Below are positions 2,222 to 39,183 of a stretch of 64,000 nucleotides of DNA, piece by piece (position 1 is the first letter of the stretch; every line of letters begins with the position of its first letter). A program made the position numbers and the translations under genes. The notes under the pieces are model-generated. The model saw only the letters and a list, made by a program, of their open reading frames with translations. It was not told the origin of the DNA and made no database searches. The stretch is taken from positions 141,858-205,857 of the IMG/VR virus record IMGVR_UViG_3300046170_000519, one strand, 5' to 3'.

Positions 2222-5200
2222 TTAGTTCGTACAGTTGTATAAAATTTCGTAATTAAAAGTTGTGGAATAAATAGTCGTTAAACCATTTGTTGTAGTTATG
2301 GTATTTTCGCTGTAAGAAATAGAGGTTTCAATCAAATAAGATTCGATACCATCTCTAGATCCACATAAGTTTATAACATCTTTTTCTGTTGGAGCCCTAG
2401 GATCTAAGCTGGGATGTTGAGAAGAACTCTGTTGTGTATTGCTGATTTCGAATGTACTATAATTAGAGGAAGATGGATCTAATACAGGAATAGCTTTAGG
2501 AACATTAAGAACATTATGGTGGCAAGGAGAATCTTGAACGCAATCACTACATTTCGAATCATTCAAGCAAGCTGTAATTGAAACTTTATGATAACCATCT
2601 TTTTCAAAATCTATAGTATAATACTCTAAATTGAAATCAGAAGTTGATGTTGGCGTTGATTCATGATGCGGTAATTCTATATTAAAATTATATTTTTCAT
2701 AATTATTAGATTTTACTTCTTTTATTAAATTAGATGTATTATTTTCATATACTTTTATATCCGCTTCATCAATGGCATTTAAATCTCCATCATGAAATAA
2801 TCCGTAGTAGTAACTTTTATCTTCTACGTCCATAGTTCCATCACAAATACTGCAAGCTTCGGAATTAGAAAGGATTGGTAATAAATCAGTAAAGTGATAT
2901 TGATTATTATAATCTTTTCCAAAAAATCTTACATGTAAAGAAGCTTGAGAATAAGGTATAAATGCTGCAGCTCCTCGATTCGCCGCAACTTTTAATAGTC
3001 GAGGATATGATATATCAGTTGAAGTATGCTGTAATACTCCGTTAAAAGCTGGCGAACCATACACTCTAAATGGATTTGAATTATTAACAAAAACGATTAA
3101 ACCTGGATTTCCTCCAGCATTAATGCATATAACATTACTGATTGAGACTCCTTGAAGAGGAGAATCACACTCAACATACATTTCTAAAGGTAATTCTTCT
3201 GATGGAGTTGGGGTATGAGTGTCTGTGTCTGTTAATGTAGTAGTCGGAGTTTCACAAGAAACACAGCATTGATCGCAAGAATCTTGTGGGTAAACATCAT
3301 TAGCTTTAGGAGTATCAGTTGAATCTGCAGGAATAACTTTATTAATTAATAAATTATTGTTAAATTCCTGAGAATTTTTGAATTGACCTGCAGAACCTCC
3401 ACAAGAAGAAGCTGAAACCGCATTACAGAAAGAAACATCAACTTGAGAGTCAAATACATAACATTTAGAGGTTGAGAAATCTTTAATAACACTTGGGAAA
3501 TCAGCATAAGATTCAACTCCTATATAAGCTGGTAATGTAGCAGAAAGGCAGTTGCTAGGCTCAGAACCATCTCCACAGGTGTATGAGCAACTAATATACT
3601 TACCGCAGAGTCCAAAGCCACAAGTCTCAGTTTCAGTTTGAGTCTGAGTTTCTGTCTCTGTTGCTGTTTGAGTCTGAGTTTCTGTCTCTGTTGCTGTTTG
3701 AGTCTGAGTTTCTGTCTCTGTTGCTGTCTGAGTCTGAGTTCTTGTTTGAGTGTTTGTAGCTGTCTGGGTCTCAACCTCTGTTTCTGTCTCTGTCTCGGTT
3801 TGAGTGTTTGTTGATGTCTCGGTCTGAGTTCGTGTTTGAGTCTTTGTTACTGTCTGGGTCTCAGTCTCTGTTTCAGTCTCTGTCTCGGTCTGAGTTTGTG
3901 TTTGAGTCTTTGTTGCTGTCTGGGTCTCAGTCTCTGTTTCAGTCTCTGTCTCGGTCTGAGTTTGTGTTTTAGTCTGAGTCTGAGTTTCTGTCTCGGTCTG
4001 AGTTTGTGTTTGAGTCTTTGTTGCTGTCTGGGTCTCAGTCTCTGTTTCAGTCTCTGTCTCGGTCTGAGTTTGTGTTTCAGTCTGAGTCTGAGTTTCTGTC
4101 TCGGTCTGAGTTCGTGTTTGAGTCTTTGTTGCTGTCTGGGTCTCAGTCTCTGTTTCAGTCTCTGCCTCGGTCTGAGTTTGTGTTTCAGTCTGAGTTTGTG
4201 TTTCAGTCTGAGTCTGAGTTTCTGTCTCGGTCTGAGTTCGTGTTTGAGTCTTTGTTGCTGTCTGGGTCTCAGTCTCTGTTTCAGTCTCTGTCTCGGTCTG
4301 AGTTTGTGTTTCAGTCTGAGTCTGAGTTTCTGTCTCGGTCTGAGTTCGTGTTTGAGTCTTTGTTGCTGTCTGGGTCTCAGTCTCTGTTTCAGTCTCTGTC
4401 TCGGTCTGAGTTTGTGTTTCAGTCTGAGTCTGAGTTTCTGTCTCGGTCTGAGTCTGAGTTTCTGTCTCGGTCTGAGTCTGAGTTTCTGTCTCGGTCTGAG
4501 TCTGAGTTTGTGTTTCTGTCTCGGTCTGAGTCTGAGTTTGTGTTTCTGTCTCGGTCTGAGTCTGAGTTTCTGTCTCGGTCTGAGTCTGAGTTTGTGTTTC
4601 AGTCTGAGTTTGTGTTTCTGTCTCGGTCTGAGTTTGTGTTTCTGTCTCGGTCTGAGTCTGAGTTTCTGTCTCGGTCTGAGTCTGAGTTTGTGTTTCAGTC
4701 TGAGTCTGAGTTTGTGTTTCAGTCTGAGTCTGAGTTTGTGTTTCAGTCTGAGTCTGAGTTTGTGTTTCAGTCTGAGTCTGAGTTTCAGTAAAGGTATTTG
4801 TTTCAGTCTGAGTCTCTGTTTCAGTCTCTGTCTCGGTCTGAGTTTGTGTTTCAGTAAAGGTATTTGTTTCAGTCTGAGTCTGAGTTTCTGTCTCGGTCTG
4901 AGTCTGGGTTTCTGTCTCGGTCTGAGTCTGAGTTTCTGTTTCAGTCTGAGTCTGAGTTTGTGTTTCAGTCTGAGTCTGAGTTTCTGTTTCAGTCTGAGTC
5001 TGAGTTTCTGTTTCAGTCTGAGTCTGAGTTTCAGTAAAGGTATTTGTTTCAGTCTGAGTCTGAGTTTCTGTCTCGGTCTGAGTCTGAGTTTGTGTTTCAG
5101 TCTGAGTCTGAGTTTCTGTCTCGGTCTGAGTCTGAGTTTGTGTTTCAGTCTGAGTCTGAGTCTCTGTTTCAGTCTGAGTCTGAGTTTCTGTCTCGGTCTG

Positions 5201-8200
5201 AGTCTGGGTTTCTGTCTCGGTCTGAGTCTGAGTCTCTGTTTCAGTCTGAGTCTGAGTTTCTGTCTCGGTCTGAGTCTGAGTTTGTGTTTCTGTCTCGGTC
5301 TGAGTCTGAGTTTCTGTCTCGGTCTGAGTCTGAGTTTCTGTTTCAGTCTGAGTCTGAGTTTCTGTTTCAGTCTGAGTCTGAGTCTGAGTTTGTGTTTCAG
5401 TAAAGGTATTTGTTTCAGTCTGAGTCTGAGTTTCTGTCTCGGTCTGAGTCTGAGTTTGTGTTTCTGTCTCGGTCTGAGTCTGAGTTTCTGTCTCGGTCTG
5501 AGTCTGAGTTTGTGTTTCTGTCTCGGTCTGAGTCTGAGTTTGTGTTTCTGTCTCGGTCTGAGTCTGAGTTTCTGTCTCGGTCTGAGTCTGAGTTTGTGTT
5601 TCTGTCTCGGTCTGAGTCTGAGTTTGTGTTTCTGTCTCGGTCTGAGTCTGAGTTTGTGTTTCTGTCTCGGTCTGAGTCTGAGTTTGTGTTTCTGTCTCGG
5701 TCTGAGTCTGAGTTTGTGTTTCTGTCTCGGTCTGAGTCTGAGTCTCTGTTTCAGTCTCTGTCTCGGTCTGAGTTTGTGTTTCAGTCTGAGTCTGAGTTTC
5801 TGTCTCGGTCTGAGTCTGAGTTTCTGTCTCGGTCTGAGTCTGAGTTTCTGTCTCGGTCTGAGTCTGAGTTTGTGTTTCTGTCTCGGTCTGAGTCTGAGTT
5901 TGTGTTTCTGTCTCGGTCTGAGTCTGAGTTTCTGTCTCGGTCTGAGTCTGAGTTTGTGTTTCAGTCTGAGTTTGTGTTTCTGTCTCGGTCTGAGTTTGTG
6001 TTTCTGTCTCGGTCTGAGTCTGAGTTTCTGTCTCGGTCTGAGTCTGAGTTTGTGTTTCAGTCTGAGTCTGAGTTTGTGTTTCAGTCTGAGTCTGAGTTTG
6101 TGTTTCAGTCTGAGTCTGAGTTTGTGTTTCAGTCTGAGTCTGAGTTTCAGTAAAGGTATTTGTTTCAGTCTGAGTCTCTGTTTCAGTCTCTGTCTCGGTC
6201 TGAGTTTGTGTTTCAGTAAAGGTATTTGTTTCAGTCTGAGTCTGAGTTTCTGTCTCGGTCTGAGTCTGGGTTTCTGTCTCGGTCTGAGTCTGAGTTTCTG
6301 TTTCAGTCTGAGTCTGAGTTTGTGTTTCAGTCTGAGTCTGAGTTTCTGTTTCAGTCTGAGTCTGAGTTTCTGTTTCAGTCTGAGTCTGAGTTTCAGTAAA
6401 GGTATTTGTTTCAGTCTGAGTCTGAGTTTCTGTCTCGGTCTGAGTCTGAGTTTGTGTTTGAGTCTGAGTCTGAGTTTCTGTCTCGGTCTGAGTCTGAGTT
6501 TGTGTTTCAGTCTGAGTCTGAGTCTCTGTTTCAGTCTGAGTCTGAGTTTCTGTCTCGGTCTGAGTCTGGGTTTCTGTCTCGGTCTGAGTCTGAGTCTCTG
6601 TTTCAGTCTGAGTCTGAGTTTCTGTCTCGGTCTGAGTCTGAGTCTGAGTTTCTGTCTCGGTCTGAGTCTGAGTTTCTGTCTCGGTCTGAGTCTGAGTTTC
6701 TGTCTCGGTCTGAGTCTGAGTTTCTGTTTCAGTCTGAGTCTGAGTTTCTGTTTCAGTCTGAGTCTGAGTCTGAGTTTGTGTTTCAGTAAAGGTATTTGTT
6801 TCAGTCTGAGTCTGAGTTTCTGTCTCGGTCTGAGTCTGAGTTTGTGTTTCTGTCTCGGTCTGAGTCTGAGTTTGTGTTTCTGTCTCGGTCTGAGTTTCTG
6901 TCTCGGTCTGAGTCTGAGTTTCTGTCTCGGTCTGAGTCTGAGTTTGTGTTTCTGTCTCGGTCTGAGTCTGAGTTTCTGTCTCGGTCTGAGTCTGAGTTTG
7001 TGTTTCTGTTTCAGTCTGAGTTTGTGTTTCTGTCTCGGTCTGAGTCTGAGTCTGAGTTTCTGTTTCAGTCTGAGTCTGAGTTTCTGTCTCGGTCTGAGTC
7101 TGAGTTTCTGTTTCAGTCTGAGTCTGAGTTTCTGTCTCGGTCTGAGTCTGAGTCTGAGTTTCTGTCTCGGTCTGAGTTTGTGTTTCTGTCTCGGTCTGAG
7201 TCTGAGTTTCTGTCTCGGTCTGAGTCTGAGTTTGTGTTTCAGTCTGAGTCTGAGTTTGTGTTTCAGTCTGAGTCTGAGTTTGTGTTTCAGTCTGAGTCTG
7301 AGTTTGTGTTTCAGTCTGAGTCTGAGTTTCAGTAAAGGTATTTGTTTCAGTCTGAGTCTCTGTTTCAGTCTCTGTCTCGGTCTGAGTTTGTGTTTCAGTA
7401 AAGGTATTTGTTTCAGTCTGAGTCTGAGTTTCTGTCTCGGTCTGAGTCTGGGTTTCTGTCTCGGTCTGAGTCTGAGTTTCTGTTTCAGTCTGAGTCTGAG
7501 TTTGTGTTTCAGTCTGAGTCTGAGTTTCTGTCTCGGTCTGAGTCTGAGTTTGTGTTTCAGTCTGAGTTTGTGTTTCTGTCTCGGTCTGAGTTTGTGTTTC
7601 TGTCTCGGTCTGAGTCTGAGTTTCTGAGTCTGAGTTTGTGTTTGAGTCTGAGTCTGAGTTTCTGTCTCGGTCTGAGTCTGAGTTTGTGTTTCAGTCTGAG
7701 TCTGAGTCTCTGTTTCAGTCTGAGTCTGAGTTTCTGTCTCGGTCTGAGTCTGGGTTTCTGTCTCGGTCTGAGTCTGAGTCTCTGTTTCAGTCTGAGTCTG
7801 AGTTTCTGTCTCGGTCTGAGTCTGAGTCTGAGTTTCTGTCTCGGTCTGAGTCTGAGTTTCTGTCTCGGTCTGAGTCTGAGTTTCTGTTTCAGTCTGAGTC
7901 TGAGTTTCTGTTTCAGTCTGAGTCTGAGTCTGAGTTTGTGTTTCAGTAAAGGTATTTGTTTCAGTCTGAGTCTGAGTTTCTGTCTCGGTCTGAGTCTGAG
8001 TTTGTGTTTCTGTCTCGGTCTGAGTCTGAGTTTGTGTTTCTGTCTCGGTCTGAGTTTCTGTCTCGGTCTGAGTCTGAGTTTCTGTCTCGGTCTGAGTCTG
8101 AGTTTGTGTTTCTGTCTCGGTCTGAGTCTGAGTTTCTGTCTCGGTCTGAGTCTGAGTTTGTGTTTCTGTTTCAGTCTGAGTTTGTGTTTCTGTCTCGGTC

Positions 8201-11200
8201 TGAGTCTGAGTCTGAGTTTCTGTTTCAGTCTGAGTCTGAGTTTCTGTCTCGGTCTGAGTCTGAGTTTCTGTTTCAGTCTGAGTCTGAGTTTCTGTCTCGG
8301 TCTGAGTCTGAGTCTGAGTTTCTGTCTCGGTCTGAGTCTGAGTCTGAGTTTCTGTTTCGGTCTGAGTCTGAGTTTCTGTCTCGGTCTGAGTCTGAGTCTG
8401 AGTTTGTGTTTCAGTAAAGGTATTTGTTTCAGTCTGAGTCTGAGTTTCTGTCTCGGTCTGAGTCTGAGTCTGAGTTTCTGTCTCGGTCTGAGTCTGAGTC
8501 TCTGTTTGAGTCTGAGTACCAGTTTCTGTTTCAGTCTGAGTCTGAGTTTGTGTTTCAGTCTGAGTCTGAGTCTGAGTTTCTGTTTCAGTCTGAGTCTGAG
8601 TTTCTGTCTCGGTCTGAGTCTGAGTCTGAGTTTGTGTTTCAGTAAAGGTATTTGTTTCAGTCTGAGTCTGAGTTTCTGTCTCGGTCTGAGTCTGAGTTTG
8701 TGTTTCTGTCTCGGTCTGAGTCTGAGTTTGTGTTTCTGTCTCGGTCTGAGTCTGAGTTTGTGTTTCTGTCTCGGTCTGAGTCTGAGTTTGTGTTTCTGTC
8801 TCGGTCTGAGTCTGAGTTTGTGTTTCTGTCTCGGTCTGAGTCTGAGTTTGTGTTTCTGTCTCGGTCTGAGTCTGAGTTTGTGTTTCTGTCTCGGTCTGAG
8901 TCTGAGTCTCTGTTTCAGTCTCTGTCTCGGTCTGAGTTTGTGTTTCAGTCTGAGTCTGAGTTTCTGTCTCGGTCTGAGTCTGAGTTTCTGTCTCGGTCTG
9001 AGTCTGAGTTTCTGTCTCGGTCTGAGTCTGAGTTTCTGTCTCGGTCTGAGTCTGAGTTTCTGTCTCGGTCTGAGTCTGAGTTTGTGTTTCTGTCTCGGTC
9101 TGAGTCTGAGTTTGTGTTTCTGTCTCGGTCTGAGTCTGAGTTTCTGTCTCGGTCTGAGTCTGAGTTTGTGTTTCAGTCTGAGTTTGTGTTTCTGTCTCGG
9201 TCTGAGTTTGTGTTTCTGTCTCGGTCTGAGTTTGTGTTTCTGTCTCGGTCTGAGTCTGAGTTTCTGTCTCGGTCTGAGTCTGAGTTTGTGTTTCAGTCTG
9301 AGTCTGAGTTTGTGTTTCAGTCTGAGTCTGAGTTTGTGTTTCAGTCTGAGTCTGAGTTTGTGTTTCAGTCTGAGTCTGAGTTTCAGTAAAGGTATTTGTT
9401 TCAGTCTGAGTCTCTGTTTCAGTCTCTGTCTCGGTCTGAGTTTGTGTTTCAGTAAAGGTATTTGTTTCAGTCTGAGTCTGAGTTTCTGTCTCGGTCTGAG
9501 TCTGGGTTTCTGTCTCGGTCTGAGTCTGAGTTTCTGTTTCAGTCTGAGTCTGAGTTTGTGTTTCAGTCTGAGTCTGAGTTTCTGTTTCAGTCTGAGTCTG
9601 AGTTTCTGTTTCAGTCTGAGTCTGAGTTTCAGTAAAGGTATTTGTTTCAGTCTGAGTCTGAGTTTCTGTCTCGGTCTGAGTCTGAGTTTGTGTTTCAGTC
9701 TGAGTCTGAGTTTCTGTCTCGGTCTGAGTCTGAGTTTGTGTTTCAGTCTGAGTCTGAGTCTCTGTTTCAGTCTGAGTCTGAGTTTCTGTCTCGGTCTGAG
9801 TCTGGGTTTCTGTCTCGGTCTGAGTCTGAGTCTCTGTTTCAGTCTGAGTCTGAGTTTCTGTCTCGGTCTGAGTCTGAGTTTGTGTTTCTGTCTCGGTCTG
9901 AGTCTGAGTTTCTGTCTCGGTCTGAGTCTGAGTTTCTGTTTCAGTCTGAGTCTGAGTTTCTGTTTCAGTCTGAGTCTGAGTCTGAGTTTGTGTTTCAGTA
10001 AAGGTATTTGTTTCAGTCTGAGTCTGAGTTTCTGTCTCGGTCTGAGTCTGAGTTTGTGTTTCTGTATCGGTCTGAGTCTGAGTTTCTGTCTCGGTCTGAG
10101 TCTGAGTTTGTGTTTCTGTCTCGGTCTGAGTCTGAGTTTGTGTTTCTGTCTCGGTCTGAGTCTGAGTTTCTGTCTCGGTCTGAGTCTGAGTCTGAGTTTG
10201 TGTTTCAGTAAAGGTATTTGTTTCAGTCTGAGTCTGAGTTTCTGTCTCGGTCTGAGTCTGAGTTTGTGTTTCTGTCTCGGTCTGAGTCTGAGTTTGTGTT
10301 TCTGTCTCGGTCTGAGTCTGAGTTTGTGTTTCTGTCTCGGTCTGAGTCTGAGTTTGTGTTTCTGTCTCGGTCTGAGTCTGAGTTTCTGTCTCGGTCTGAG
10401 TCTGAGTTTGTGTTTCAGTCTGAGTTTGTGTTTCTGTCTCGGTCTGAGTTTGTGTTTCTGTCTCGGTCTGAGTCTGAGTTTCTGTCTCGGTCTGAGTCTG
10501 AGTTTGTGTTTCAGTCTGAGTCTGAGTTTGTGTTTCAGTCTGAGTCTGAGTTTGTGTTTCAGTCTGAGTCTGAGTTTGTGTTTCAGTCTGAGTCTGAGTT
10601 TCAGTAAAGGTATTTGTTTCAGTCTGAGTCTCTGTTTCAGTCTCTGTCTCGGTCTGAGTTTGTGTTTCAGTAAAGGTATTTGTTTCAGTCTGAGTCTGAG
10701 TTTCTGTCTCGGTCTGAGTCTGGGTTTCTGTCTCGGTCTGAGTCTGAGTTTCTGTTTCAGTCTGAGTCTGAGTTTGTGTTTCAGTCTGAGTCTGAGTTTC
10801 TGTTTCAGTCTGAGTCTGAGTTTCTGTTTCAGTCTGAGTCTGAGTTTCAGTAAAGGTATTTGTTTCAGTCTGAGTCTGAGTTTCTGTCTCGGTCTGAGTC
10901 TGAGTTTGTGTTTGAGTCTGAGTCTGAGTTTCTGTCTCGGTCTGAGTCTGAGTTTGTGTTTCAGTCTGAGTCTGAGTCTCTGTTTCAGTCTGAGTCTGAG
11001 TTTCTGTCTCGGTCTGAGTCTGGGTTTCTGTCTCGGTCTGAGTCTGAGTCTCTGTTTCAGTCTGAGTCTGAGTTTCTGTCTCGGTCTGAGTCTGAGTCTG
11101 AGTTTCTGTCTCGGTCTGAGTCTGAGTTTCTGTCTCGGTCTGAGTCTGAGTTTCTGTTTCAGTCTGAGTCTGAGTTTCTGTTTCAGTCTGAGTCTGAGTC

Positions 11201-22887: not shown

Positions 22888-22898
22888 AGTACATAGCC

Positions 22899-23846
22899 CT
22901 AGCCTTTGACTTTGAATGTTGCAGTGTATCCAAGATTACCCGCTCCAAACTTAGGTGATTGAGATAAATATAAAGTAGCTCCCTCTACTAAAGTTAAAGG
23001 AGAGGTGAAATCAGATTTTGAGTTTTTTTCATCTAATGGGTGTGTCCATGATTTTTCTGATTTTGTTCCATCTGCAGCTGATTGATTTAATGTTATTGTT
23101 GATTCTGTATTAGAACCTCCTGTTGTAAATATAGAAGCTGTAACACTTAAAACTTTTTTGTTATGCCAGGAGGAGGGGACAACTATGATTGCATCTTCAA
23201 AATTAAAATTATCAATAAGTTCAGAAGCTGGAACATTATTTATTGCAAAATACTCTTCTTCATTGGGGTATTTTTTCCAATTAGCTTCATCACGAGTCCA
23301 GACTCCGCCGTTTCCGTTTGATTCACCTTCTACTTTATGATTAATCCAAGCATTTATTAAAGCTTGTGAAGGAGCATTATCCCCAGAAACTTGAGCATTG
23401 TACTGAGTAACAGAGATATCTCCAACAGCTGCATTATATAAAGTTTCATAATCATCAATCATAAATTGATAAGACTGGTTTTTCTCTATTACATAGACTA
23501 CCATGCCTAATTTTAAACGACCAGAACTCATTAAATCTCTGTTTAGCTCTAATAAAGCAGGAGTAGTTATTATTTCAACACAGGGAGGGACCTCATTCCT
23601 GTTACAGCTTCTTGGAACTTCTTCTGTTCCACCAGGTGTATATATTAATGGTATAAAATTAAGAGGATCATCAAGTGGAATGCCTGTGACTCCATTAGTA
23701 GTACTATAAGTAATATTGTTTAAATGATAATATTCTTGTAAACCACCAATGAGAGATGTCCCAGAAGTTACTCCAGTTTGAGAACTCATGGAAAAAGAAT
23801 CTGCAACTTGTTTTGCTGTTAAATGTATGTGATCTGAAAAACTCAT
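22899..23846 (-). CDS. hypothetical protein, probably structural (315 aa)
   Basis: ORF tightly packed between two T-repeat genes; non-repetitive; contains RLKLGMVVYVIEKNQSYQF, a motif style I associate with phage tail/fibre proteins (weak). Confidence 0.6.
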   Translation of the reverse strand: MSFSDHIHLTAKQVADSFSMSSQTGVTSGTSLIGGLQEYYHLNNITYSTTNGVTGIPLDDPLNFIPLIYTPGGTEEVPRSCNRNEVPPCVEIITTPALLELNRDLMSSGRLKLGMVVYVIEKNQSYQFMIDDYETLYNAAVGDISVTQYNAQVSGDNAPSQALINAWINHKVEGESNGNGGVWTRDEANWKKYPNEEEYFAINNVPASELIDNFNFEDAIIVVPSSWHNKKVLSVTASIFTTGGSNTESTITLNQSAADGTKSEKSWTHPLDEKNSKSDFTSPLTLVEGATLYLSQSPKFGAGNLGYTATFKVKG

Positions 23847-23855
23847 AGCTTTATA

Positions 23856-25382: not shown

Positions 25383-25421
25383 TTTTCGAATAAATACTAA
25401 AAAAGAATGTGTAAATTGTTT

Positions 25422-25427
25422 TTACAC
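25422..25427 (-). promoter_or_regulatory. GTGTAA motif, one arm of the inverted repeat tgtgtaaa-N5-tttacaca (25408-25428)
   Basis: 39 nt upstream of ATG 25382. Confidence 0.45.
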
Positions 25428-25468
25428 AAAAAAATATAGTTTTGTTTATTTTTTGCTAAATACATAAT

Positions 25469-28303: not shown

Positions 28304-28304
28304 G

Positions 28305-30974: not shown

Positions 30975-30984
30975 AATAAACTAA

Positions 30985-31013
30985 TAAAAGTATTTTACAC
31001 GAAAATACTTTTA
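30985..31013 (-). terminator. 12-bp inverted repeat (possible terminator or regulatory hairpin) overlapping a GTGTAA motif
   Basis: taaaagtatttt-acacg-aaaatactttta between the fcl-like gene and the 889-aa gene. The stem is AT-rich, so it is weak as an intrinsic terminator. Confidence 0.35.
30995..31000 (-). promoter_or_regulatory. GTGTAA motif
   Basis: 20 nt upstream of ATG 30974. Confidence 0.45.
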
Positions 31014-31049
31014 GAAGCCGATTTTATATAAAAAAAGTTACATTTTAGA

Positions 31050-31982
31050 TTACTCTCTAAGGTCTGCTGATGATTTATTACTCAAATACCAGTTTATTGT
31101 TTGCTCAAGACCTTCCTCAAAAGAAATGGGATGAAAGTCTGGGAAAATAATTTTCATTTTTGAGACATCTAACACTTTTCTTTGTACTCCATTTGGTTTT
31201 GATGTATCCCATTTCAAATCTCCTTTGTATTTTATAAATTTAGCAGTTAAATCAGCAAGTTCTTTGATTGATGTCCCAATACCTGTCCCGATGTTTACAG
31301 GATCTAGATCGTGATCAACATTTACAGACATAGAAATAACCTTGGCAGCATCCTTAACGTGTAAAAATTCTCTAACAGGACTTCCATCACCCCAATTAGT
31401 AATTTCGGGTTCATTTATTTGATCAGAAAACCTTTTTATTAAAGCTGATACTACATGAGCTCGATATTCTTGAAATACATCGTGTTCTCCGTATAAGTTA
31501 GTAAGCACTAGGTGGTTTCCTAATAATCCATATTGTTGATAATAAGATTTTTGAGCTATTAATTGAATTTTTTTTGAAGAGCCGTAGCCGATAACAGAAT
31601 CGTGCATGGGGCCATTCCAAAAATCTTTTTCTTTCATATCTCCTTCGACGTGACCTGGGTAAGCACAGGCAGAACCTACAGCAACAACTTTATTAACATC
31701 GTTTTTTGCCGCAGCCTCATAAATATTAGCTGTCATTAAAGTGTTATTCCTGAAGAGGTTAGCGGGCTCTTCGACATTAATGTTTAATCCGCCATAATAT
31801 GCAGCCGAATGAATTATGACTTCTGGCTTATGTTTTTTAATATAATTAAAAGTTGAATTATAATCATAAAGATTAAACTCAGAGCTTCTTGGAGCAAGGA
31901 CTTCGAATTTTTTTTCGCACTCGCTAACGATTTGCCTCCCCAGAAAACCTGAACCGCCTGTAACTAATATTTTTTTATACAT
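31050..31982 (-). CDS. fcl: GDP-L-fucose synthase-like epimerase/reductase (Fcl/WcaG family)
   Basis: GGSGFLG NAD(P)-binding motif, HSAAYYGG, GSACAYP (Ser/Cys), YGSSKK (YxxxK), NLYG.HD, AHVV (catalytic His), WGDGSPVREFLHV, WDTSKPNG..RK.LD. Confidence 0.8.
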   Translation of the reverse strand: MYKKILVTGGSGFLGRQIVSECEKKFEVLAPRSSEFNLYDYNSTFNYIKKHKPEVIIHSAAYYGGLNINVEEPANLFRNNTLMTANIYEAAAKNDVNKVVAVGSACAYPGHVEGDMKEKDFWNGPMHDSVIGYGSSKKIQLIAQKSYYQQYGLLGNHLVLTNLYGEHDVFQEYRAHVVSALIKRFSDQINEPEITNWGDGSPVREFLHVKDAAKVISMSVNVDHDLDPVNIGTGIGTSIKELADLTAKFIKYKGDLKWDTSKPNGVQRKVLDVSKMKIIFPDFHPISFEEGLEQTINWYLSNKSSADLRE

Positions 31983-32907
31983 TTTTATATTTACTCCTAC
32001 TATCTAAAGCTGGAACAGCTTGAATTAATTCGTTAATACCTTCTTCTATAGTTTTTTTAATATTAAATCCTATATTATTTATTTTCTTATAAGACACTTC
32101 ATAATTCCTTTTATCTTCATCTTCTCCAAACTCCGCAAAATGAAGATAGTAATCTACTTTGTCTTTTATCATCAAAGCTATTTCTTCTTTACTAAAGTTA
32201 TTAAAATCTCCCCCAACATTATAAGTATTATTCTTCATAATATCATAATTCTCTATAGCATAAACTATACTATCAGCCATATCATCTACATGAATAAAAG
32301 TTCTTTTGAAGCTTTTTTCAAACATAACAAGAGTTTTGTTATTAATAGCCTGATAGACAAAATCATTAATAAGAAGATCTAATCTCATCCTTGGAGACAA
32401 ACCAAAAGCTGTGGCAAAACGATAAGCTACGGCACCATTTTCATTTAAAAAAATATTTTCAGCTTCAGTTTTAGTTGTTCCATATAAACTTATAGGGTTT
32501 AAAGGAGTTTCTTCAGTGCAAATTTCATTTTCAATAACTCCATAGTTAGACCCTGTTGAAGCATATACAGTTCCTTGATCTTTGGATAATAAGGACGATA
32601 TTAATTTAGAAGAGTCTACGTTAACTGTTTTTGCTAAATCTGGATTCTTTCTGCAAGCTGGAAACCCAACAATAGCCGCCAAATGTATAACAAATTCAAA
32701 GTTATGAACTAAGTTTTTCATTAAAGTTTCATCTCTAGCATCTCCTTTGATGAATTTAAACTTTTTATTTTTAAAAAAGGGGATAATTGTATGACCATTG
32801 TCGTACATCAAATTATCGACAACACAGACCTTAAACCCTTTTTCTAATAATTTGGGAACTAAAACAGAACCCACGTATCCAGCACCTCCAGTAACTAAAA
32901 TTTTCAT
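31975..32907 (-). CDS. extended SDR nucleotide-sugar oxidoreductase/epimerase, Cj1427-like
   Basis: GGAGYVGS, DNLMY, HLAAIVGFPAC, YGTTK, FGLSPRMRLDLLINDF, GEDEDKRNY; overlaps the fcl-like start by 8 nt. The Cj1427 likeness is from recall and was not aligned. Confidence 0.75.
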   Translation of the reverse strand: MKILVTGGAGYVGSVLVPKLLEKGFKVCVVDNLMYDNGHTIIPFFKNKKFKFIKGDARDETLMKNLVHNFEFVIHLAAIVGFPACRKNPDLAKTVNVDSSKLISSLLSKDQGTVYASTGSNYGVIENEICTEETPLNPISLYGTTKTEAENIFLNENGAVAYRFATAFGLSPRMRLDLLINDFVYQAINNKTLVMFEKSFKRTFIHVDDMADSIVYAIENYDIMKNNTYNVGGDFNNFSKEEIALMIKDKVDYYLHFAEFGEDEDKRNYEVSYKKINNIGFNIKKTIEEGINELIQAVPALDSRSKYKNV

Positions 32908-32953
32908 AATATGTTTATTATGAATAGTAAATTACTTTTACTAAAAATCTAAA

Positions 32954-33730
32954 CTAATAATTAAAAAAATTACTTTTATAAAGAGGTGAATTTAGTTTTT
33001 CATCTAAATTAGAGCTATGATACTGGTGGTAGAAGTCGAAATTTAACTTTAGACCTAAATTGTAAACAGGGTTATGAGCGCATAAAGAATTTATAAAATT
33101 GATATCAATGTATTTTTTAAATATTAAATCTTCATTCAAAAAACTTCTTTGATTGATAAGAGATTTATTGAAAATAAATATTCCTCTAGCTGAACCAAAG
33201 AAAGGGCAAATATTATTTCTATAAAAACAATTATAGGCATAGTGAGGTTGATTAATTACAAACTCATTTATGTCGTCACTTAAAACATGTTTTATTGGAT
33301 CTTTCGATTGTAATTCGTCTAAAGATCTAGATTGGGAATAAGCGAGATTAGGTAGCTTGCTCGAAGAAAAAAACCAGTCAAAGAAAGATATTCCAGGAAT
33401 TGTGTCTTGGTCAATTTTTAATATAAAATTAAAAGAGCAGTGATCTATGCAAAAGTTTAATGCATGTGGTATTGAAAAAACTGACTCTTTACAAAATTTT
33501 TTTGAAGGAGTTAATATTTTAATAAAATCTTTTTTTTTGTATAGATTAATTGATTCAATAATAGGAGTTTCTGAGAAGTAGTCACAAACTATAATCTCTA
33601 CTCGATTGATTAAATTTAATTTTTCTATAAAAAAAGTAATACAATTTAATGTATTTGTTAATCTTTTAAGCGAAGATCCTTTATAGAAATCATTTCTTGA
33701 GCAAAGAATAATGCTTAATTTTTCGTTCAT
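32954..33730 (-). CDS. putative GT-A (GT2-like) glycosyltransferase
   Basis: N-terminal LSIILCSRND, EIIVCDY.S, ALN...., ILKIDQD (DxD-like); lies in the sugar cluster. Confidence 0.5.
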   Translation of the reverse strand: MNEKLSIILCSRNDFYKGSSLKRLTNTLNCITFFIEKLNLINRVEIIVCDYFSETPIIESINLYKKKDFIKILTPSKKFCKESVFSIPHALNFCIDHCSFNFILKIDQDTIPGISFFDWFFSSSKLPNLAYSQSRSLDELQSKDPIKHVLSDDINEFVINQPHYAYNCFYRNNICPFFGSARGIFIFNKSLINQRSFLNEDLIFKKYIDINFINSLCAHNPVYNLGLKLNFDFYHQYHSSNLDEKLNSPLYKSNFFNY

Positions 33731-33732
33731 GA

Positions 33733-34092
33733 TTAAATAAAGTTTGATATATGATCACTACTAAAAGAAAAATAAAAAGAATCTTCATTTAAATAGTAAG
33801 TATTTTTGAAATTAAATGGCAAACTTTTATCACTTTTATAAATTATAACATGATTCAGGAGATTAACAGGTAATTCATAATCTTTAGATGATCTTATATT
33901 TTTAAAAATTTTTTTTAAAAAAACCTCATGATCAGAACTTAAACTTATTAAATAAAAAATAGAATTATTTAATAGCAAGCTACATTTGTTCATTTGAGCT
34001 ACTAAAGTATTAGTTAAATGAATAGGTAATTGAGGTGCATAAATACCCACACAAAATTTATTGTTTTTTTTAATTGAATTATATACGCTCAA
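33733..34092 (-). CDS. hypothetical protein (119 aa)
   Basis: ORF coupled on both sides (4-nt overlap upstream, 2-nt gap downstream). Confidence 0.5.
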   Translation of the reverse strand: MSVYNSIKKNNKFCVGIYAPQLPIHLTNTLVAQMNKCSLLLNNSIFYLISLSSDHEVFLKKIFKNIRSSKDYELPVNLLNHVIIYKSDKSLPFNFKNTYYLNEDSFYFSFSSDHISNFI

Positions 34093-34775
34093 GATTTTTT
34101 ATGAAGAATTTTTGTATTGGGATATAAACTAATAACCTCATCTAAAGTTTTTTTTGAATCAATAGGGTCGCTTATGTTGACGATAAAGTCTGTATTAATA
34201 AAATTATTATAATAATCTTTATCATTTTTGCAAGATTCATAAATCGCAACATCAAAACTTAAATAACTTAATCCATGAGAGACTTTTCTAAGTAAAAATT
34301 TTTCAGATTTATCTAATATTTTTTTTAATTGTTTAGAGTTTTTATAAATAGCAACTCCATTTAAATGCTCTCGATAACTTAAGTTTTTATGATATACATT
34401 ATCGCCTTTATATTTTGATCCTGCTATAATAAAATTATTATTATTTACAAAAATTAAAAAAGTAGAGATCCACCCGTCTATTAACTCAACATCTGTTTCT
34501 AATAGTAGAAAACTTTTGTATTTTATTGGGTAATCAATTAAGTAGTTTAATGATTCAAAGAAAAGAATATTAGGGCCAGATGTTAAACTATAAGGAGTTA
34601 TTTCCGTCGGATTAAAAGGGTGAAAACTTTTATCATAAACATCTTCCGAGCTATTTAAATTTAAATTTACAAAATATATATTAAAATTATACTTTAACTT
34701 TTTTTCTTTTATATATTTCTCAAAGCTTTTGCTTGAAGCATTTACAAAAATAAAAAAATCAAATACATCACGCAA
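34089..34775 (-). CDS. hypothetical protein, possibly glycosyltransferase-like (228 aa, TTG start)
   Basis: FLLLETD (ExD-like), W...GSKYKG...HLNGVAIY...FDV pattern; lies in the sugar cluster. The function call is weak. Confidence 0.4.
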   Translation of the reverse strand: MRDVFDFFIFVNASSKSFEKYIKEKKLKYNFNIYFVNLNLNSSEDVYDKSFHPFNPTEITPYSLTSGPNILFFESLNYLIDYPIKYKSFLLLETDVELIDGWISTFLIFVNNNNFIIAGSKYKGDNVYHKNLSYREHLNGVAIYKNSKQLKKILDKSEKFLLRKVSHGLSYLSFDVAIYESCKNDKDYYNNFINTDFIVNISDPIDSKKTLDEVISLYPNTKILHKKS

Positions 34776-34895
34776 ATTATTATTTATATTTTTTTTAAAA
34801 AAATTTTCTAAACTTCCATTTTTATACTCTTTTAAAGTGCAAAGTAAAAAAATGCAGTTATATATTTTATTTTTTTTTTATATTTTTTCAATATA

Positions 34896-37349
34896 TTACT
34901 GGCAGCTTTCACAAGATTCTCCTTTAGCTCTAGCCTCTAGGCTACAAGATTTAGGTTCAGATTTAGATTCACCTGTGGATTTTTCTACTTTACTAGCAGC
35001 TCTATTGCGTAAATAATATGTAGTTTTAAGTCCTAACTGCCAACACTTAAAGTAAATATCATTTAAATATTTTAAGGATGTTGTTTTGTTATAAAGGTTA
35101 AAACTTATAGCTTGATCAACCCACTTTTGACGAACAGAATTGATTTCTATTAATTTTAACATGTCTCTATCAAATGCAGTTTTATACTTATTTTTTAAAT
35201 CTTCTGGAATATTTTCGTTAGTTAGAGATAAATCACCATCAATGCTTTTTATGAATGAAGCTATTTCTGGATTCCAGAGACCTCTATCTTTCATATCATT
35301 GACAAAATGAGGATTAGTGATGTAGAAATTACCACTTTTATTTTCATAAACAAAAAGAACAGAAAAATTAGGTTCAATACTTTGCTCCACACCATTTATA
35401 TATCCTATGGTTGCGGTTGGAGCTATAGCCATTACATTTGAATTTCTCATACCATGCTTAGAAATATGACTCCTAACTTTTTCCCAATCTTTTAGATTTT
35501 CTGTAGATTTGTTTTTTTCTCCCCTGTATGACATTAAATTATTGAAAGAGTCAATAGGTAGAATATTTTTACTCCACAGTGATCCATTATAACTACTATA
35601 AGATCCTTTTTCTCTAGCTAAAAGGGAGCTGGCATAAATTGCATGACAGGAATAAAACTCAAAAAGTTTGTCGTTAAAACTCTTAGCTTCATCGCTGTCA
35701 ATTTGAATATTCATTTTATGTAAAACATCGTGTATTGACATCATTCCTAGGCCAATTGGTCTATGCTTTAAGTTGCTATTTTCAGCTTCTTTTGTTGGGT
35801 AGAAATTTAGATCAATTACATTATCAAGTATTCTAATAGCTGTATGTATTGTTGATTTTAATTTATTAAAATCGATGCAATAACCAGTTTTGCCATGAGT
35901 TGTTTTTTCTTTTAAATGATTTAATATATTGATAGAACCTAAATTGCAAACAGCTGTTTCTCCTATTTCTGTTTTTTCTCCCTGATTGTATTTTGATGGT
36001 TTTGTGTGTAGAGTAATTTCCGTGCAAAGATTTGAGCTATTGACCGCACCCTTATGTTGATTAGTGTATCGAATATTACAGGGGTCTTTAAATGTATTCC
36101 ATGGGTGAGATGTTTCAAAGAGAACTTTAAGCATTTTTTTCCAAAGATCTTTTGCGGGGATTATCCGATAATTTTTAATTAAACCTGCATCTGCCGCTTT
36201 GCATAACTCATCGTATCGAGTGTCAAACTGATCTCCGAAAAGATCATGCAAGGTTTTTCCGTCATCACCTTCTGTATCTTTTGGGTCAAAGAAATACCAA
36301 ACATCTTCTTTTTGGACCCTACGCATAAATTCATCAGGAATCCATGCTGCGGTATTCATGTCGTGACAGCGTAAGCGGTCGTCTCCTGTATTTCTCCTTA
36401 AGTTTAAAAAATCTTCAAAATCTAAATGCCATGGCTCTAAATAAGCACATCCAGCACCTGGGCGCTTCCCTCCTTGATTGACAGCAACTAAAAGGTCGTT
36501 GTATATTTTCAACCAAGGAACTAAACCGCTAGAAATACCATTAGTCCCTTCAATATGAGAACCTGTAGAACGAAATGGTGTTACATCAAGACCTAAGCCT
36601 CCAGCATATTTTGATTTGCGAGCTTCTTGCCAAGCACCGTCAAATATCCCATCAATACTATCATCAAAAGTATTTAAGTAGCAGGAACTAAGTTGAGAGT
36701 GAGTGGTTCCGCTATTAAAAAGAGTTGGGGTTGAGGGAGTGTACAAGAATTGACTAAACAAATTGTAAAATTCTATAGCTTTTTCGTTTTTATTTTTTTC
36801 GTTGATTGCTAGTCCCATTGCGACTCGCATCCAAAAACTTTGGGGAGCCTCCATGCATTTTTCATCCACCCTAATAAAATATCTGTCTGTTAAAATCTGT
36901 ATACCTAAATATTTAAAATCTAAATCTCTTCTAATTTTAATAGATTCAGCAAGCTTTTGTAAGTCGAAGTTTAGTAATTTTTCATCAAGCCTGTTTTCTT
37001 TTACTAGCTTTTTTGTATTTTGAATGAAACTTTTTCTATATTGTAATTTAAAAGTGTCTGAATCCACACCTTCTTTAAAAACTTCTTTATATAGATTATT
37101 TAATAATAATCTAGCCGCAGCAAAAGAGTAATTAGGCTCTTTTTCTATTTTTTCTCTAGCTGATAAAATCAAAGCTTGATCGATCTCTTTTGTTGTTATT
37201 TTGTCAAAAAGCTGTAATTGTGCATCTAGAACTATTTCGCTGGCAGATACATCGGTAATTCCTTCACAAGCTCTTTGCGAGCTTGCATTAATTTTATCTA
37301 CATGAAATTTTTCAAGCCTTCCGTTTCTTTTCTTTACTTTTATATTCAT
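34896..37349 (-). CDS. nrdA: class I ribonucleotide reductase alpha subunit with N-terminal ATP cone
   Basis: VKKRNG ATP-cone start, TPTLFNSG, LSSCYL, NLCTEI, CNLGS, IAPTATI, TTYYLR and C-terminal CESCQ. Confidence 0.96.
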   Translation of the reverse strand: MNIKVKKRNGRLEKFHVDKINASSQRACEGITDVSASEIVLDAQLQLFDKITTKEIDQALILSAREKIEKEPNYSFAAARLLLNNLYKEVFKEGVDSDTFKLQYRKSFIQNTKKLVKENRLDEKLLNFDLQKLAESIKIRRDLDFKYLGIQILTDRYFIRVDEKCMEAPQSFWMRVAMGLAINEKNKNEKAIEFYNLFSQFLYTPSTPTLFNSGTTHSQLSSCYLNTFDDSIDGIFDGAWQEARKSKYAGGLGLDVTPFRSTGSHIEGTNGISSGLVPWLKIYNDLLVAVNQGGKRPGAGCAYLEPWHLDFEDFLNLRRNTGDDRLRCHDMNTAAWIPDEFMRRVQKEDVWYFFDPKDTEGDDGKTLHDLFGDQFDTRYDELCKAADAGLIKNYRIIPAKDLWKKMLKVLFETSHPWNTFKDPCNIRYTNQHKGAVNSSNLCTEITLHTKPSKYNQGEKTEIGETAVCNLGSINILNHLKEKTTHGKTGYCIDFNKLKSTIHTAIRILDNVIDLNFYPTKEAENSNLKHRPIGLGMMSIHDVLHKMNIQIDSDEAKSFNDKLFEFYSCHAIYASSLLAREKGSYSSYNGSLWSKNILPIDSFNNLMSYRGEKNKSTENLKDWEKVRSHISKHGMRNSNVMAIAPTATIGYINGVEQSIEPNFSVLFVYENKSGNFYITNPHFVNDMKDRGLWNPEIASFIKSIDGDLSLTNENIPEDLKNKYKTAFDRDMLKLIEINSVRQKWVDQAISFNLYNKTTSLKYLNDIYFKCWQLGLKTTYYLRNRAASKVEKSTGESKSEPKSCSLEARAKGESCESCQ

Positions 37350-37380
37350 ATAATTTTAGATATTTTGCAATGATAACACA

Positions 37381-37386
37381 TTACAC
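37381..37386 (-). promoter_or_regulatory. GTGTAA motif
   Basis: 31 nt upstream of the nrdA ATG (37349). Confidence 0.45.
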
Positions 37387-37430
37387 TAATATAATCAAGA
37401 CGAAACAGAAAAAAAGATATTAACAAAAAA

Positions 37431-38291
37431 TTAATTATCAAATACTGCGGACTTAAATTCTCCCCAGTCTAACTTATCTCTGACATTAAGATTTACCTCC
37501 CATGCAGCTTTAAGAACTGTTGGTTGTAGATCATTTTTTTCAAAAGTATCTATCAATGAGTTAATATCTTTAGGGAAGCATGTACCCCCAAAACCTTTTT
37601 GTCCATCATGCCCTGGGACTTGATAATGAGATTGCCCTATTCTTTTATCTGATAAAACTCCGTTTATAATAGGGTTCCAATCTAACCCAAGTTTTTCAAT
37701 CAAGGTATAAATTTCATTAAAGAAACTAACTTTACAAGCAAAAAAACAATTAGCTATATATTTGACCGACTCAGATTCGTCGCTCTTCATTAACATTGTT
37801 TTAATGTTAGGAAAAGCTGATTGTAATAATTTTTCAACAAGATGTCCTGTTCTTTTATTATTAGTAAATCCGACGATATGTCTGTCAGCATTAAGGAAAT
37901 CTTCTTTAGCAAATTTAGCAGTTAAGAATTCTGGACTATGAACAATATTTAGATTTGGATATTTGTCTTGCAGGTCTTTTGTTGTGCCGATTGGAACCGT
38001 AGATTTTATAATTAAAATAGGATTAGACTTCACCTTTTCTGAAACCTCTTTAAGGCAGGAATTTATAATTGATAAATTACATTCGCCACCTCTTAGGGAT
38101 CTCATTGGGGTTGGAACGCAAATAAAAACAAAATCTTGCGAAACAACTTCTTCAAGCGAATTTTTTGATAATTTTTTATTTTTGTCAAAAATTTTTACAT
38201 TAAATTTTTGGAAACCATTGGCGATAGCGGAGCCAACAAAACCATTGCCGATTACGCCAATGTTTAATTTACTGAGATTGATTTTTTTCAA
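37431..38291 (-). CDS. ugd: UDP-glucose/GDP-mannose dehydrogenase family protein, short phage type lacking the C-terminal domain
   Basis: IGNGFVG, FICVPTP, IKST.PIGT, SPEFL, ESVKYIANCFFACKVSFFNE, D.RIG, GFGGTCFPKD; only 286 aa. Confidence 0.8.
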   Translation of the reverse strand: MKKINLSKLNIGVIGNGFVGSAIANGFQKFNVKIFDKNKKLSKNSLEEVVSQDFVFICVPTPMRSLRGGECNLSIINSCLKEVSEKVKSNPILIIKSTVPIGTTKDLQDKYPNLNIVHSPEFLTAKFAKEDFLNADRHIVGFTNNKRTGHLVEKLLQSAFPNIKTMLMKSDESESVKYIANCFFACKVSFFNEIYTLIEKLGLDWNPIINGVLSDKRIGQSHYQVPGHDGQKGFGGTCFPKDINSLIDTFEKNDLQPTVLKAAWEVNLNVRDKLDWGEFKSAVFDN

Positions 38292-39183
38292 TCCAATCCT
38301 CCAGTTTTTGTTTGGGAATCCAGTTCAATAACTCTCTGGCTTTATTGTTATTAGCTTGAGTTTCTTTAGCTTCTCCAAGTCTAGCTGGAATATGAGTAAA
38401 TTCACCCCCTATTAAATCTTTAATTTCATTAACGGAATGATTTAAACCTGTCCCAAGATTTATAAGTTCACCCACAGGCTTTTTGTTGTCGAGATTAGCT
38501 GCTAAAATATTTGCTTTAGCAATATCTTTTACATAAGTGAAATCTCTTCTCTGTGTTCCATCTCCTACAATTGTCATTAGTTCTTTGTTTGATTTTTGTC
38601 TAAGAAAAATTCCTATGACGGGAGCATATTGACCTTTCAGGGGCTGTCTTTCGCCATAGACATTGAAATATCTAAAACAAACTGTTTCTATATTAAATAG
38701 ATTTGTATACATAAAGCACAGATCTTCTCCAGCGGTTTTTGTTACAGAATAAGGATTCAAGCAATCCTTGGGCATATCTTCTCTTTGGGGAGGAGTATTT
38801 TTTAAACCATAAGCTGCTGATGTAGAGCTGTAAATGACTCTTTTAACATTATTTATTTTTGCAGCCTGTAGTACAGAACAGGTTCCTACAACGTTTGTTT
38901 TAGCTGCTAATATTGGGTTTTCTAAAGTTGGCTGAATGCGAGCTTCCGCTGCAAGGTGGAAAATAACATCAACACCTTTACATAATGGAGAAAAGTGATC
39001 GAAGTCGCAAACATCAACTTTAAAATTTTTTGTTTCTTTATTCCAGAAGAATTCACTATTGGCATCAGAAGACTCATTGTCGACCACAGTGACTTCATTT
39101 CCTAAAGATAGTAGTTGATCAACAACATGAGAGCCTATAAAACCAGCTCCTCCAGTGACTAAACATTTTTTATTTTTAATCAT
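38269..39183 (-). CDS. NAD-dependent nucleotide-sugar 4-epimerase (GalE/WbpP-like)
   Basis: GGAGFIGSH, FHLAA, YSSTSAAYG, YSVTK, RYFNVYG.RQ, GDGTQRRDFTYV. Confidence 0.85.
   Translation of the reverse strand: MIKNKKCLVTGGAGFIGSHVVDQLLSLGNEVTVVDNESSDANSEFFWNKETKNFKVDVCDFDHFSPLCKGVDVIFHLAAEARIQPTLENPILAAKTNVVGTCSVLQAAKINNVKRVIYSSTSAAYGLKNTPPQREDMPKDCLNPYSVTKTAGEDLCFMYTNLFNIETVCFRYFNVYGERQPLKGQYAPVIGIFLRQKSNKELMTIVGDGTQRRDFTYVKDIAKANILAANLDNKKPVGELINLGTGLNHSVNEIKDLIGGEFTHIPARLGEAKETQANNNKARELLNWIPKQKLEDWIEKNQSQ

Follow-up and report, generated by a model that had tools for sequence, protein, structure and literature searches.

Why would a phage carry a row of genes whose products place threonine at every second residue over hundreds of positions, and why should these genes lie directly downstream of a putative glycosyltransferase and of enzymes predicted to modify a GDP-sugar? 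The question is raised by a 64-kb stretch of DNA (hereafter the window) from the IMG/VR virus record IMGVR_UViG_3300046170_000519, which derives from an uncultured marine siphophage with a ~206-kb genome. The answer put forward here, tentatively as a whole, is that the threonine-repeat (Thr-x) proteins are modular stalked proteins, probably virion fibres, and that the neighbouring GT-A enzyme likely decorates their spacers with O-linked sugar in the cytoplasm, drawing on a GDP-sugar tailored by the phage. Positions refer to the window unless marked as genome positions, and all genes of this finding lie on the minus strand.

Threonine-rich spacers in modular proteins

Scanning for Thr-dense frames identified the tracts of three intact genes (P1, P2 and P3), which are followed by a repeat-free gene and a giant fourth locus (lengths in amino acids, aa):

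28305-30974, minus strand: P1, 889 aa, with a Thr-x tract of 448 aa
25469-28303, minus strand: P2, 944 aa, with an N-terminal domain containing conserved Cys, a Thr-x tract of 704 aa and a Cys-containing C-terminal domain of ~110 aa
23856-25382, minus strand: P3, 508 aa, with an N-terminal domain homologous to that of P2, a Thr-x tract of 206 aa and a C-terminal domain of ~200 aa
22899-23846, minus strand: p315, conserved and repeat-free, between P3 and the giant locus
2222-22887, minus strand: giant Thr-x locus, with a short N-terminus, five Thr-x segments and a 460-aa C-terminal domain with 22 Cys

The initial annotation had counted four same-strand Thr-x genes (about 195, 450, 685 and 6,400 aa); three are intact (206, 448 and 704 aa), but the fourth is not one open reading frame (ORF). 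Threonine recurs at every second residue with an alternation of 90-99% in the tracts of P1-P3 and 99.3-100% in the giant locus. The intervening residue is mostly Glu or Gln, and the register is kept across occasional Asn-Thr-Phe or Gly-Ser-Phe punctuation. Codons vary within the tracts (ACT, ACA and ACC for Thr, GAA and GAG for Glu, CAA and CAG for Gln); this drift of third codon positions under a stable residue pattern indicates constraint at the protein level and, together with the intact, in-frame non-repeat domains at both ends, establishes the tracts as coding. The phase positions hold 96% Thr and about 2% Ser. At the exceptions Ser accounts for 46-93% of residues, though it makes up only 1-8% at the x positions, which points to the hydroxyl group rather than beta-branching as the conserved feature of the repeat. 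Proline is nearly absent from the tracts in the window.

P1 consists of a beta-rich N-terminal domain (about 130 aa), the Thr-x tract, a CC-containing domain and two C-terminal copies of a ~85-aa unit. These copies (about 28305-28850, minus strand) are near-identical and begin FYLEWTSDPGQWNSFF; the unit returned no family match. The N-terminal domains of P2 and P3 are related to each other and share 47% and 50% identity, respectively, with their counterparts in a related contig (L037), while p315 is 56% identical to a 356-aa protein at the matching position of another (L039).

Neither signal peptide, membrane segment nor LPxTG motif was found in any Thr-x protein, and the linked transferase described below (GT258) likewise carries none of these. 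Enzyme and putative acceptor can therefore meet in the cytoplasm. A fully extended chain measures about 0.35 nm per residue, which is an upper bound; on this measure the spacers of P3, P1 and P2 would span at most 0.07, 0.16 and 0.25 micrometres, respectively.

An adjoining cassette for predicted sugar tailoring and transfer

Upstream of P1 lies a cluster of eight genes, listed here in the order of transcription (SDR, short-chain dehydrogenase/reductase):

38269-39183, minus strand: SDR resembling nucleotide-sugar epimerases/decarboxylases, 304 aa (PF01370, E 9e-57)
37431-38291, minus strand: short Ugd-like dehydrogenase, 286 aa (PF03721 and PF00984, the N-terminal and central domains only)
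34896-37349, minus strand: class I ribonucleotide reductase (RNR) alpha subunit (PF02867, E 3e-173; PF00317; ATP-cone), a non-sugar gene within the cluster
34089-34775, minus strand: p228, conserved, with invariant SGPN, LLLETD and HLNG motifs
33733-34092, minus strand: p119, a small conserved protein travelling with the glycosyltransferase
32954-33730, minus strand: GT258, a soluble glycosyltransferase of predicted GT-A fold
31975-32907, minus strand: Cj1427-like NAD-dependent GDP-sugar C4-dehydrogenase (by similarity), 310 aa (PDB 6VO6/6VO8, 313 bits, E 2e-92)
31050-31982, minus strand: Fcl-like GDP-sugar 3,5-epimerase/4-reductase (by similarity), 310 aa, overlapping the preceding gene by 8 nt

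No terminator-like site was detected on the coding strand from 22.8 to 39.5 kb, and the gaps between genes are short.

The assignment of GT258 draws on three lines of evidence. Its neighbours by protein language model (Atlas) are viral GT2/Glyco_transf_7C clusters (score 0.98, 172-174 shared features); a DxD motif (D107, D109) within LKIDQDT is invariant in six homologues; and in a structure search (Foldseek) with its AlphaFold2 (AF2) model, the top 50 matches among solved structures in the PDB are all GT-A enzymes (E 4e-6 to 1e-4, probability 1.0), the model being confident in the N-terminal half only (predicted local distance difference test score, pLDDT, about 75; 57 for the whole model). 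No match was obtained in the family libraries Pfam and NCBIfam, nor between the transferase profile and PDB sequences. On its neighbours, motif and model, GT258 is classed as a GT-A fold glycosyltransferase.

The product of 31975-32907 matches 6VO6/6VO8 over residues 2-299. These entries, which bear a generic depositors' title, we take to be Cj1427, the C4-dehydrogenase of the Campylobacter heptose pathway, defined by its oxidation of GDP-D-glycero-D-manno-heptose at C4. The gene is 84-91% identical across phage relatives, and sequence similarity identifies its product as a Cj1427-like GDP-sugar C4-dehydrogenase, an enzyme whose chemistry has been described (PMC10680097). The Fcl-like protein scores 222 bits against NF047922, below the 500-bit equivalog cut-off, so that the similarity is at family level only; it is closer to the GDP-fucose synthetase of E. 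coli (1BSV, 183 bits) than to the C. jejuni reductases (104 bits). The whole genome holds only three SDR genes, all in this cluster, and no nucleotidyltransferase gene.

The best solved relatives of the first SDR (38269-39183) are NDP-sugar epimerases and UDP-glucuronate decarboxylases; its gene is missing in L004 and L005 and present in a 3300072015 contig and in L035. The Ugd-like protein covers positions 72-298 of 413 of TIGR03026 and lacks the C-terminal UDP-binding domain of the three-domain Ugd architecture. A short form (300 aa, 55% identity) also adjoins the SDR/Fcl pair in L035 (9095-9997), and the gene looks like a conserved viral short form, not obviously a pseudogene. Homologues of p119 (118-127 aa) adjoin the transferase in L004, L009, L011, L017, L022 and L037. 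For p228, which shares 42% identity with residues 76-279 of a 599-aa protein of relatives, the nearest Atlas entries are viral clusters without names, and the models of these clusters resemble GT2/GT8. Its own AF2 model is poor (pLDDT 47) and gave no fold match; its motifs and predicted strand-helix order fit a GT-A-like transferase, which it possibly is. Thus, of the upstream genes named in the initial annotation, the epimerase, the Cj1427-like SDR, the Fcl-like enzyme and one glycosyltransferase (GT258) hold, but Ugd is a short form and the second glycosyltransferase (p228) is not established; the RNR alpha gene inside the cluster had gone unmentioned.

Linkage of transferase and repeat proteins in related phages

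Relatives of GT258 (35-47% identity) were gathered from IMG/VR, JGI, ENA and Logan contigs, and the contigs carrying relatives are labelled L004-L043. In contigs that reach past the cassette, the next gene, on the same strand, encodes the P1 N-terminal domain followed by a Ser/Thr-x tract; this holds in five lineages. Short-read contigs of relatives usually end within the tract. The repeat motifs differ by lineage:

Window and L014: TETQ
L004, L005, L019 and L020: TVTETATITP
L009: TLTDTVTDTESQ
L011: TTTETLTQSAS, with the gene order changed (SDR, Fcl, small gene, transferase, P1)
L037 and L039: TETETE, with intact orthologues of P1, P2 and P3

Across these relatives the alternation is kept, while the x residue and tract length vary (orthologues of 381 aa against about 6,900, and of 508 against 893). 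The sugar enzymes are 70-91% identical across lineages, against 35-47% for the transferase and 21-39% for the P1 N-terminal domain. Since both of the latter change fast, the transferase and its putative acceptor diverge together. An exhaustive profile search among 1.84 billion proteins recovered only 19 representatives of the P1 N-terminal domain; the stretch that follows it is Thr-x, Pro-Thr, classic Ser/Thr/Pro-rich or absent. The linkage of the transferase and p228 genes to the P1 family is robust.

The region is a variable island between two RNR genes. In the window's genome the alpha gene (34896-37349) and the beta gene (genome 129192-130205) are about 45 kb apart, with the cassette and the Thr-x genes between them; the distance is 1.8 kb in L035 and about 17 kb in L039.

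Thr-x proteins elsewhere in the genome

At least eight proteins encoded in this genome, including one from the head module, contain Thr-x spacers. Their common plan is an N-terminal domain, a Thr-x spacer and Cys-rich domains. The further members are:

556-2196, minus strand: p546, Cys-rich, with short Thr-x stretches; homologues at 28-33% identity in L034 and L039
genome 130263-142409 (N-terminus in the window at 1-552), minus strand: p4048, 4,048 aa, 274 Cys, many Thr-x linkers and an N-terminal LysM domain
genome 5800-8757: p985, a Thr-x protein between a capsid-like gene and tail genes
genome 117852-126800: p2982, a Thr-x protein outside the present finding

The LysM gene noticed after the repeats is real: p4048, which starts at 552 and continues past the window start, matches PF01476 over residues 6-45 with 25.2 bits (gathering cut-off 20.9). 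Its C-terminal ~565 aa are 35% identical to a 620-aa L039 protein with a GDSGSG motif and a weak NAL1_N match, and by this similarity may form a trypsin-like protease domain. In a more distant relative of ~218 kb (L033, 195-2393), the homologue of a 415-aa tail-module protein (genome 2566-3813) carries an added Thr/Pro/Ser-x tract and a C-terminal extension; from this homologue, spacers may have been grafted onto core structural proteins too.

The window is the final 64 kb of a 205,857-bp record rated complete by CheckV. The phage is tailed, and its large terminase is of the T4 type. A tape-measure ORF (PF10145) of at least 3,379 aa (53856-63995, minus strand) has its start just 5 nt short of the record's end; with about 0.15 nm allowed for each residue, it predicts an exceptionally long tail of about 0.5 micrometres. 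Megablast against the phage collection returned no match for the phage DNA. The terminase reaches at most 26% identity there, and, with no close cultured relative, no host can be inferred. Near-identical DNA occurs in at least 15 seawater metagenome runs, one biofilm run and metatranscriptomes. Among the divergently transcribed genes for a deoxynucleoside monophosphate (dNMP) kinase and a single-stranded DNA-binding protein (SSB) lies a 418-aa protein (41246-42502, minus strand) with a weak tetraspanin-like/coiled-coil signal and 48-56% identity in relatives.

An oversized locus broken by frame switches

The giant locus has an ATG at 22887 and a stop at 2222, and its tract runs from 22857 down to 3605. 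The Thr-x residues amount to 6,369 aa (1856+324+1309+1542+1338), each of the five segments being a stop-free Thr-x frame with an alternation of 99.3-100%. The Thr frame switches six times, at about 17272, 16290, 12353, 12305, 12268 and 7625; five of the switches are net -1, and that at 12353 is an extra T, which creates a TGA. As assembled, therefore, the locus cannot encode one 6,400-aa protein, and the only minus-strand ORF listed over the tract is 16282-22887. In comparison with paralogous copies inside the tract, the switch at 17272 is a clean 4-nt deletion and that at 7625 a 14-nt insertion.

The tract itself is a mosaic: just 11% of its 60-mers occur once, and identical blocks, some as long as 1 kb, are found two to seven times. 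In L039 (a 157.7-kb ENA contig) the orthologue comes after the p315 homologue and is intact at 381 aa; it shares the N-terminus (MLSVFARS) and the Cys-rich C-terminal domain with the giant locus and has about 45 Thr-x residues. As this orthologue has only 381 aa, the 19-kb tract represents a lineage-specific expansion, and by the same comparison probably a recent one. The C-terminal domain is homologous to that of p985 (33% identity) and has no relative in IMG/VR; the junction 41-mers and the start of the giant gene are likewise absent from all other IMG/VR contigs.

On this evidence the balance tips slightly towards the 6,400-aa gene not being one protein, either as a recent expansion in decay or through assembly, consensus or polishing errors drawn from a heterogeneous natural population. 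The six frame switches, the small indels against paralogous copies, the scarcity of unique 60-mers and the short orthologue all fit such an origin. Logan contigs of four sequencing runs, compared over 12200-12420, are only 35-60 nt long and leave part of the junction near 12,300 uncovered in three of the four; in addition, the names of sister contigs end in _pilon, a suffix suggestive of long-read assemblies that were polished. On the other hand, five stop-free Thr-x frames of 324-1,856 codons would not be expected if the locus were an old pseudogene, the Logan contigs of run X4 (depth 344) and part of run X7 contain the extra T at 12353, and the C-terminal domain is unbroken and continues the reading frame of the final Thr-x segment. 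The individual switches may be either real slippage mutations or consensus/polishing errors. If intact, the spacer would extend to about 2.2 micrometres at most.

Three other explanations of the breaks were considered and rejected. They are not the edges of duplicated blocks, as alignment to paralogous copies shows small indels; programmed -1 frameshifting finds no slippery heptamer at 17272 and no motif common to the sites; and an alternative genetic code is contradicted by the breaks being frame changes rather than in-frame stops, the single TGA arising from the inserted T. Plus-strand ORFs of 1,263-1,923 aa over 3836-22860 are antisense artefacts of a repeat that leaves all frames largely open, and a public gene call in a relative (L034, 12838-14043) repeats this antisense mistake.

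Proposed role and competing explanations

The sequence itself displays the repeats, the way the proteins are built, the families to which the enzymes belong, the gene order shared with relatives and the lack of any export signal; a virion location, glycosylation with its acceptor, and a function for the Thr-x proteins are inferred. Each would consist of a small N-terminal anchor, a Thr-x spacer of freely varying length and Cys-rich C-terminal domains, which would act as binding heads folding in oxidising seawater. The Cj1427-like C4-dehydrogenase and the Fcl-like epimerase/reductase would remodel a GDP-sugar. Late in infection, the soluble GT-A transferase, perhaps with p228, would then O-glycosylate the Thr/Ser hydroxyls in the cytoplasm, in the manner of GtfAB, turning the spacers into stiff, hydrated and protease-resistant bottle-brush stalks. 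Mounted on virions, as the family member encoded in the head module suggests, such stalks, when stretched to their full length, would place the binding heads at a distance of 0.07 to 0.25 micrometres.

That the modular proteins are probably virion fibres is suggested by p985, which is encoded between capsid-like and tail genes and has a Cys-rich domain in common with the giant locus. Glycosylation of the spacers is likely in view of the glycosyltransferase and the GDP-sugar-modifying pair directly upstream of a Ser/Thr-x protein. The long glycosylated filaments first proposed for this locus keep the support of the cassette-P1 adjacency in five lineages, the lack of export signals and the conserved hydroxyl, but are weakened by the tract-free L041 and the frame-broken giant gene. 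Remodelling of the infected cell surface, the other role considered at the outset, is unlikely because the proteins carry no export signal.

A number of observations weigh against the proposed role. L041, although its RNR beta is 96% identical, lacks any tract of at least 10 Ser/Thr-x dipeptides in its 18.5 kb, yet retains a homologue of GT258 (39%), a gene resembling p228 and a member of the P1 family. In L043 the gene after Fcl encodes a P1-like protein whose linker is just a Pro-Thr stretch of ~30 aa. In L035 the SDR/Fcl pair (91% and 65% identical) belongs to a larger cluster with NeuB, DegT and GT1 genes, RNR comes next, and no tract lies less than 10 kb away; distant homologues of GT258 (27-34% identity), which come from other environments, likewise lack both the tracts and the SDR pair in their vicinity. 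Within the genome itself, the cassette is remote from p985, p2982 and p4048, another locus also holds glycosyltransferase genes, and the 6,400-aa gene is frame-broken as assembled. Finally, p315 and all domains of the Thr-x proteins lack a match in Pfam, PHROGs and NCBIfam, and Thr-rich linkers occur in many unrelated bacterial extracellular proteins. The co-occurrence suggested as a check in the initial annotation is hence borne out in part: the cassette precedes a Ser/Thr-x P1 gene in five lineages, but L041 retains cassette genes with no long tract, and the link of the cassette to long tracts as such is not strict.

These exceptions lend weight to the main rival explanation, in which the tracts are unglycosylated, polyanionic extended linkers whose spacing role derives solely from charge and composition, and the cassette serves another target such as other virion proteins, the host envelope or a secreted glycan. 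By itself the composition of the tracts (half Thr and about 20-30% Glu, with Glu filling as much as 60% of x positions in the relative with (TE)n repeats) would favour an extended soluble chain; in unrelated bacteria, Thr-rich linkers join SH3, NlpC/P60, CBM and sortase-anchored domains; L041 and L043 keep cassette genes with the tract absent or very short; and several Thr-x genes lie 30-170 kb from the cassette. However, the transferase and the P1 family stay adjacent even after rearrangement of the gene order, Thr is replaced by Ser and not by Ala, Ile or Pro, and the transferase diverges together with the P1 N-terminal domain. With these points set against it, the unglycosylated-linker explanation is somewhat unlikely.

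Similarly, the Thr-x proteins might not belong to the virion: lysis could release them, or they could serve, for example, as decoys or a LysM-anchored matrix within the infected cell or at its surface. The location of the genes in an accessory island among DNA-metabolism genes, outside the tail module, would suit this explanation, as would the N-terminal LysM domain of p4048 and the lack of any structural family match. Nevertheless, it is quite improbable: signal peptides, membrane segments and sortase motifs are all missing from the proteins, their very high Cys content (274 in p4048) suggests that they end up outside the cell once it has lysed, and the paralogue p985 in the head-tail module shares the distal domain.

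Glycosylation of phage DNA by the sugar genes is highly improbable, for although the cassette sits beside RNR, a dNMP kinase and SSB and the second glycosyltransferase locus abuts a C5 cytosine methylase, the genome contains no Tet_JBP and no thymidylate-synthase/dCMP-hydroxymethylase-like gene, and GDP-linked sugars are, to our knowledge, not the usual donors for DNA glycosylation. The modification as such is known in phages (bioRxiv 10.1101/2023.12.21.572611). The second glycan locus (genome 65000-79000, L040) comprises DUF6492, two GT2, a GT11-like gene (fucosyltransferase family), a methyltransferase, an ATE_C-like gene and a 597-aa paralogue of p228, and directly adjoins the C5 cytosine DNA methylase.

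Returning to glycosylated virion stalks, a more far-reaching form can be envisaged, in which a marine jumbo siphophage lineage bears a virion glycocalyx of head- and tail-borne Thr-x filaments, built by cytoplasmic phage O-glycosylation with a phage-tailored GDP-sugar and with repeat expansion possibly to the micrometre scale. In this full extent the proposal is speculative and, on balance, unlikely.

Relation to known glycosylation systems

By analogy, the stalked proteins compare most closely with the bacterial serine-rich-repeat (SRR) adhesins. The tracts of these adhesins have a hydroxy residue at every second position, in a dipeptide pattern. Both groups combine very long period-2 hydroxy-residue tracts of variable length with a non-repeat binding region (a putative one in the phage proteins), and in both, glycosyltransferase genes lie beside the gene for the (here candidate) substrate. 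SRR proteins are glycosylated inside the cell before display (PMC7948813). In contrast, the Thr-x family uses Thr and not Ser and is phage-encoded with several paralogues, its glycosylation being putative. SRR proteins are recognised by a signal peptide, export through SecA2/SecY2 and an LPxTG wall anchor; the Thr-x proteins lack the signal peptide and the LPxTG motif, and the phage gives no hint of an accessory Sec system, though SecA2/SecY2 were not searched for. PF00534, the family of the GT-B enzymes GtfA/GtfB, is absent from the 206-kb genome, the linked transferase having a predicted GT-A fold.

Among viruses, mycobacteriophages offer a precedent, in that phage glycosyltransferases modify virion proteins, with glycans on terminal extensions of structural proteins (Freeman et al., 2023, cited in PMC12619734). 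Their acceptors are short C-terminal tails of capsid and tail-tube subunits, whereas the candidates here are modular proteins in their own right, whose spacers run to hundreds or even thousands of residues; the phage-encoded sugar-nucleotide pathway is a further difference from the mycobacteriophage case. Mimivirus and other giant viruses encode sugar-nucleotide enzymes together with glycosyltransferases and coat their surface fibrils with sugars (PMC9614988, PMC11042495). These are viruses of eukaryotic hosts, however, and their fibril protein is a folded GMC oxidoreductase rather than a dipeptide repeat. Dipeptide-repeat stalks thus do not appear to be used in either case.

As regards the sugar itself, the pairing of a Cj1427-like C4-dehydrogenase with an Fcl-family epimerase/reductase resembles the capsular heptose-modification pathway of C. 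jejuni, in which Cj1427 is combined with C4-reductases (PMC10680097). Unlike that pathway, the phage cassette has no separate C3/C5 epimerase, no heptose-synthesis genes were found here, and the reductase is closer to E. coli Fcl. The spacers also recall the Thr/Pro-rich linkers of secreted bacterial multidomain enzymes, which are likewise low-complexity hydroxy-amino-acid spacers between extracellular domains; compared with these linkers, the Thr-x tracts keep to their period of 2 much more strictly, reach much greater lengths (up to thousands of residues) and, in the window, contain almost no Pro. As to mucin-like domains, in which dense O-glycans sit on a Pro/Thr/Ser-rich tract, the Thr content of the Thr-x tracts fits, but the near-absence of Pro does not.

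Implications

These tracts defeat both gene callers and assemblers, with contigs that stop short, ORFs predicted on the antisense strand and reading frames that go missing, and such genes are therefore probably under-reported. Within the Thr-x family, nature offers spacers that range from 0 to thousands of residues in length and that also differ in chemistry. Were the stalks both glycosylated and borne by virions, a widespread marine phage would build sugar-coated filaments with its own enzymes, a strategy for which comparable cases are so far found only in SRR adhesins, the short capsid tails of mycobacteriophages and giant viruses. Long filaments would then change the reach of the virion for a host or particle in dilute seawater and would affect its resistance to proteases and grazers. 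Should the virion glycocalyx prove real, it would represent a phage counterpart of the serine-rich-repeat adhesins and a new class of phage appendage.

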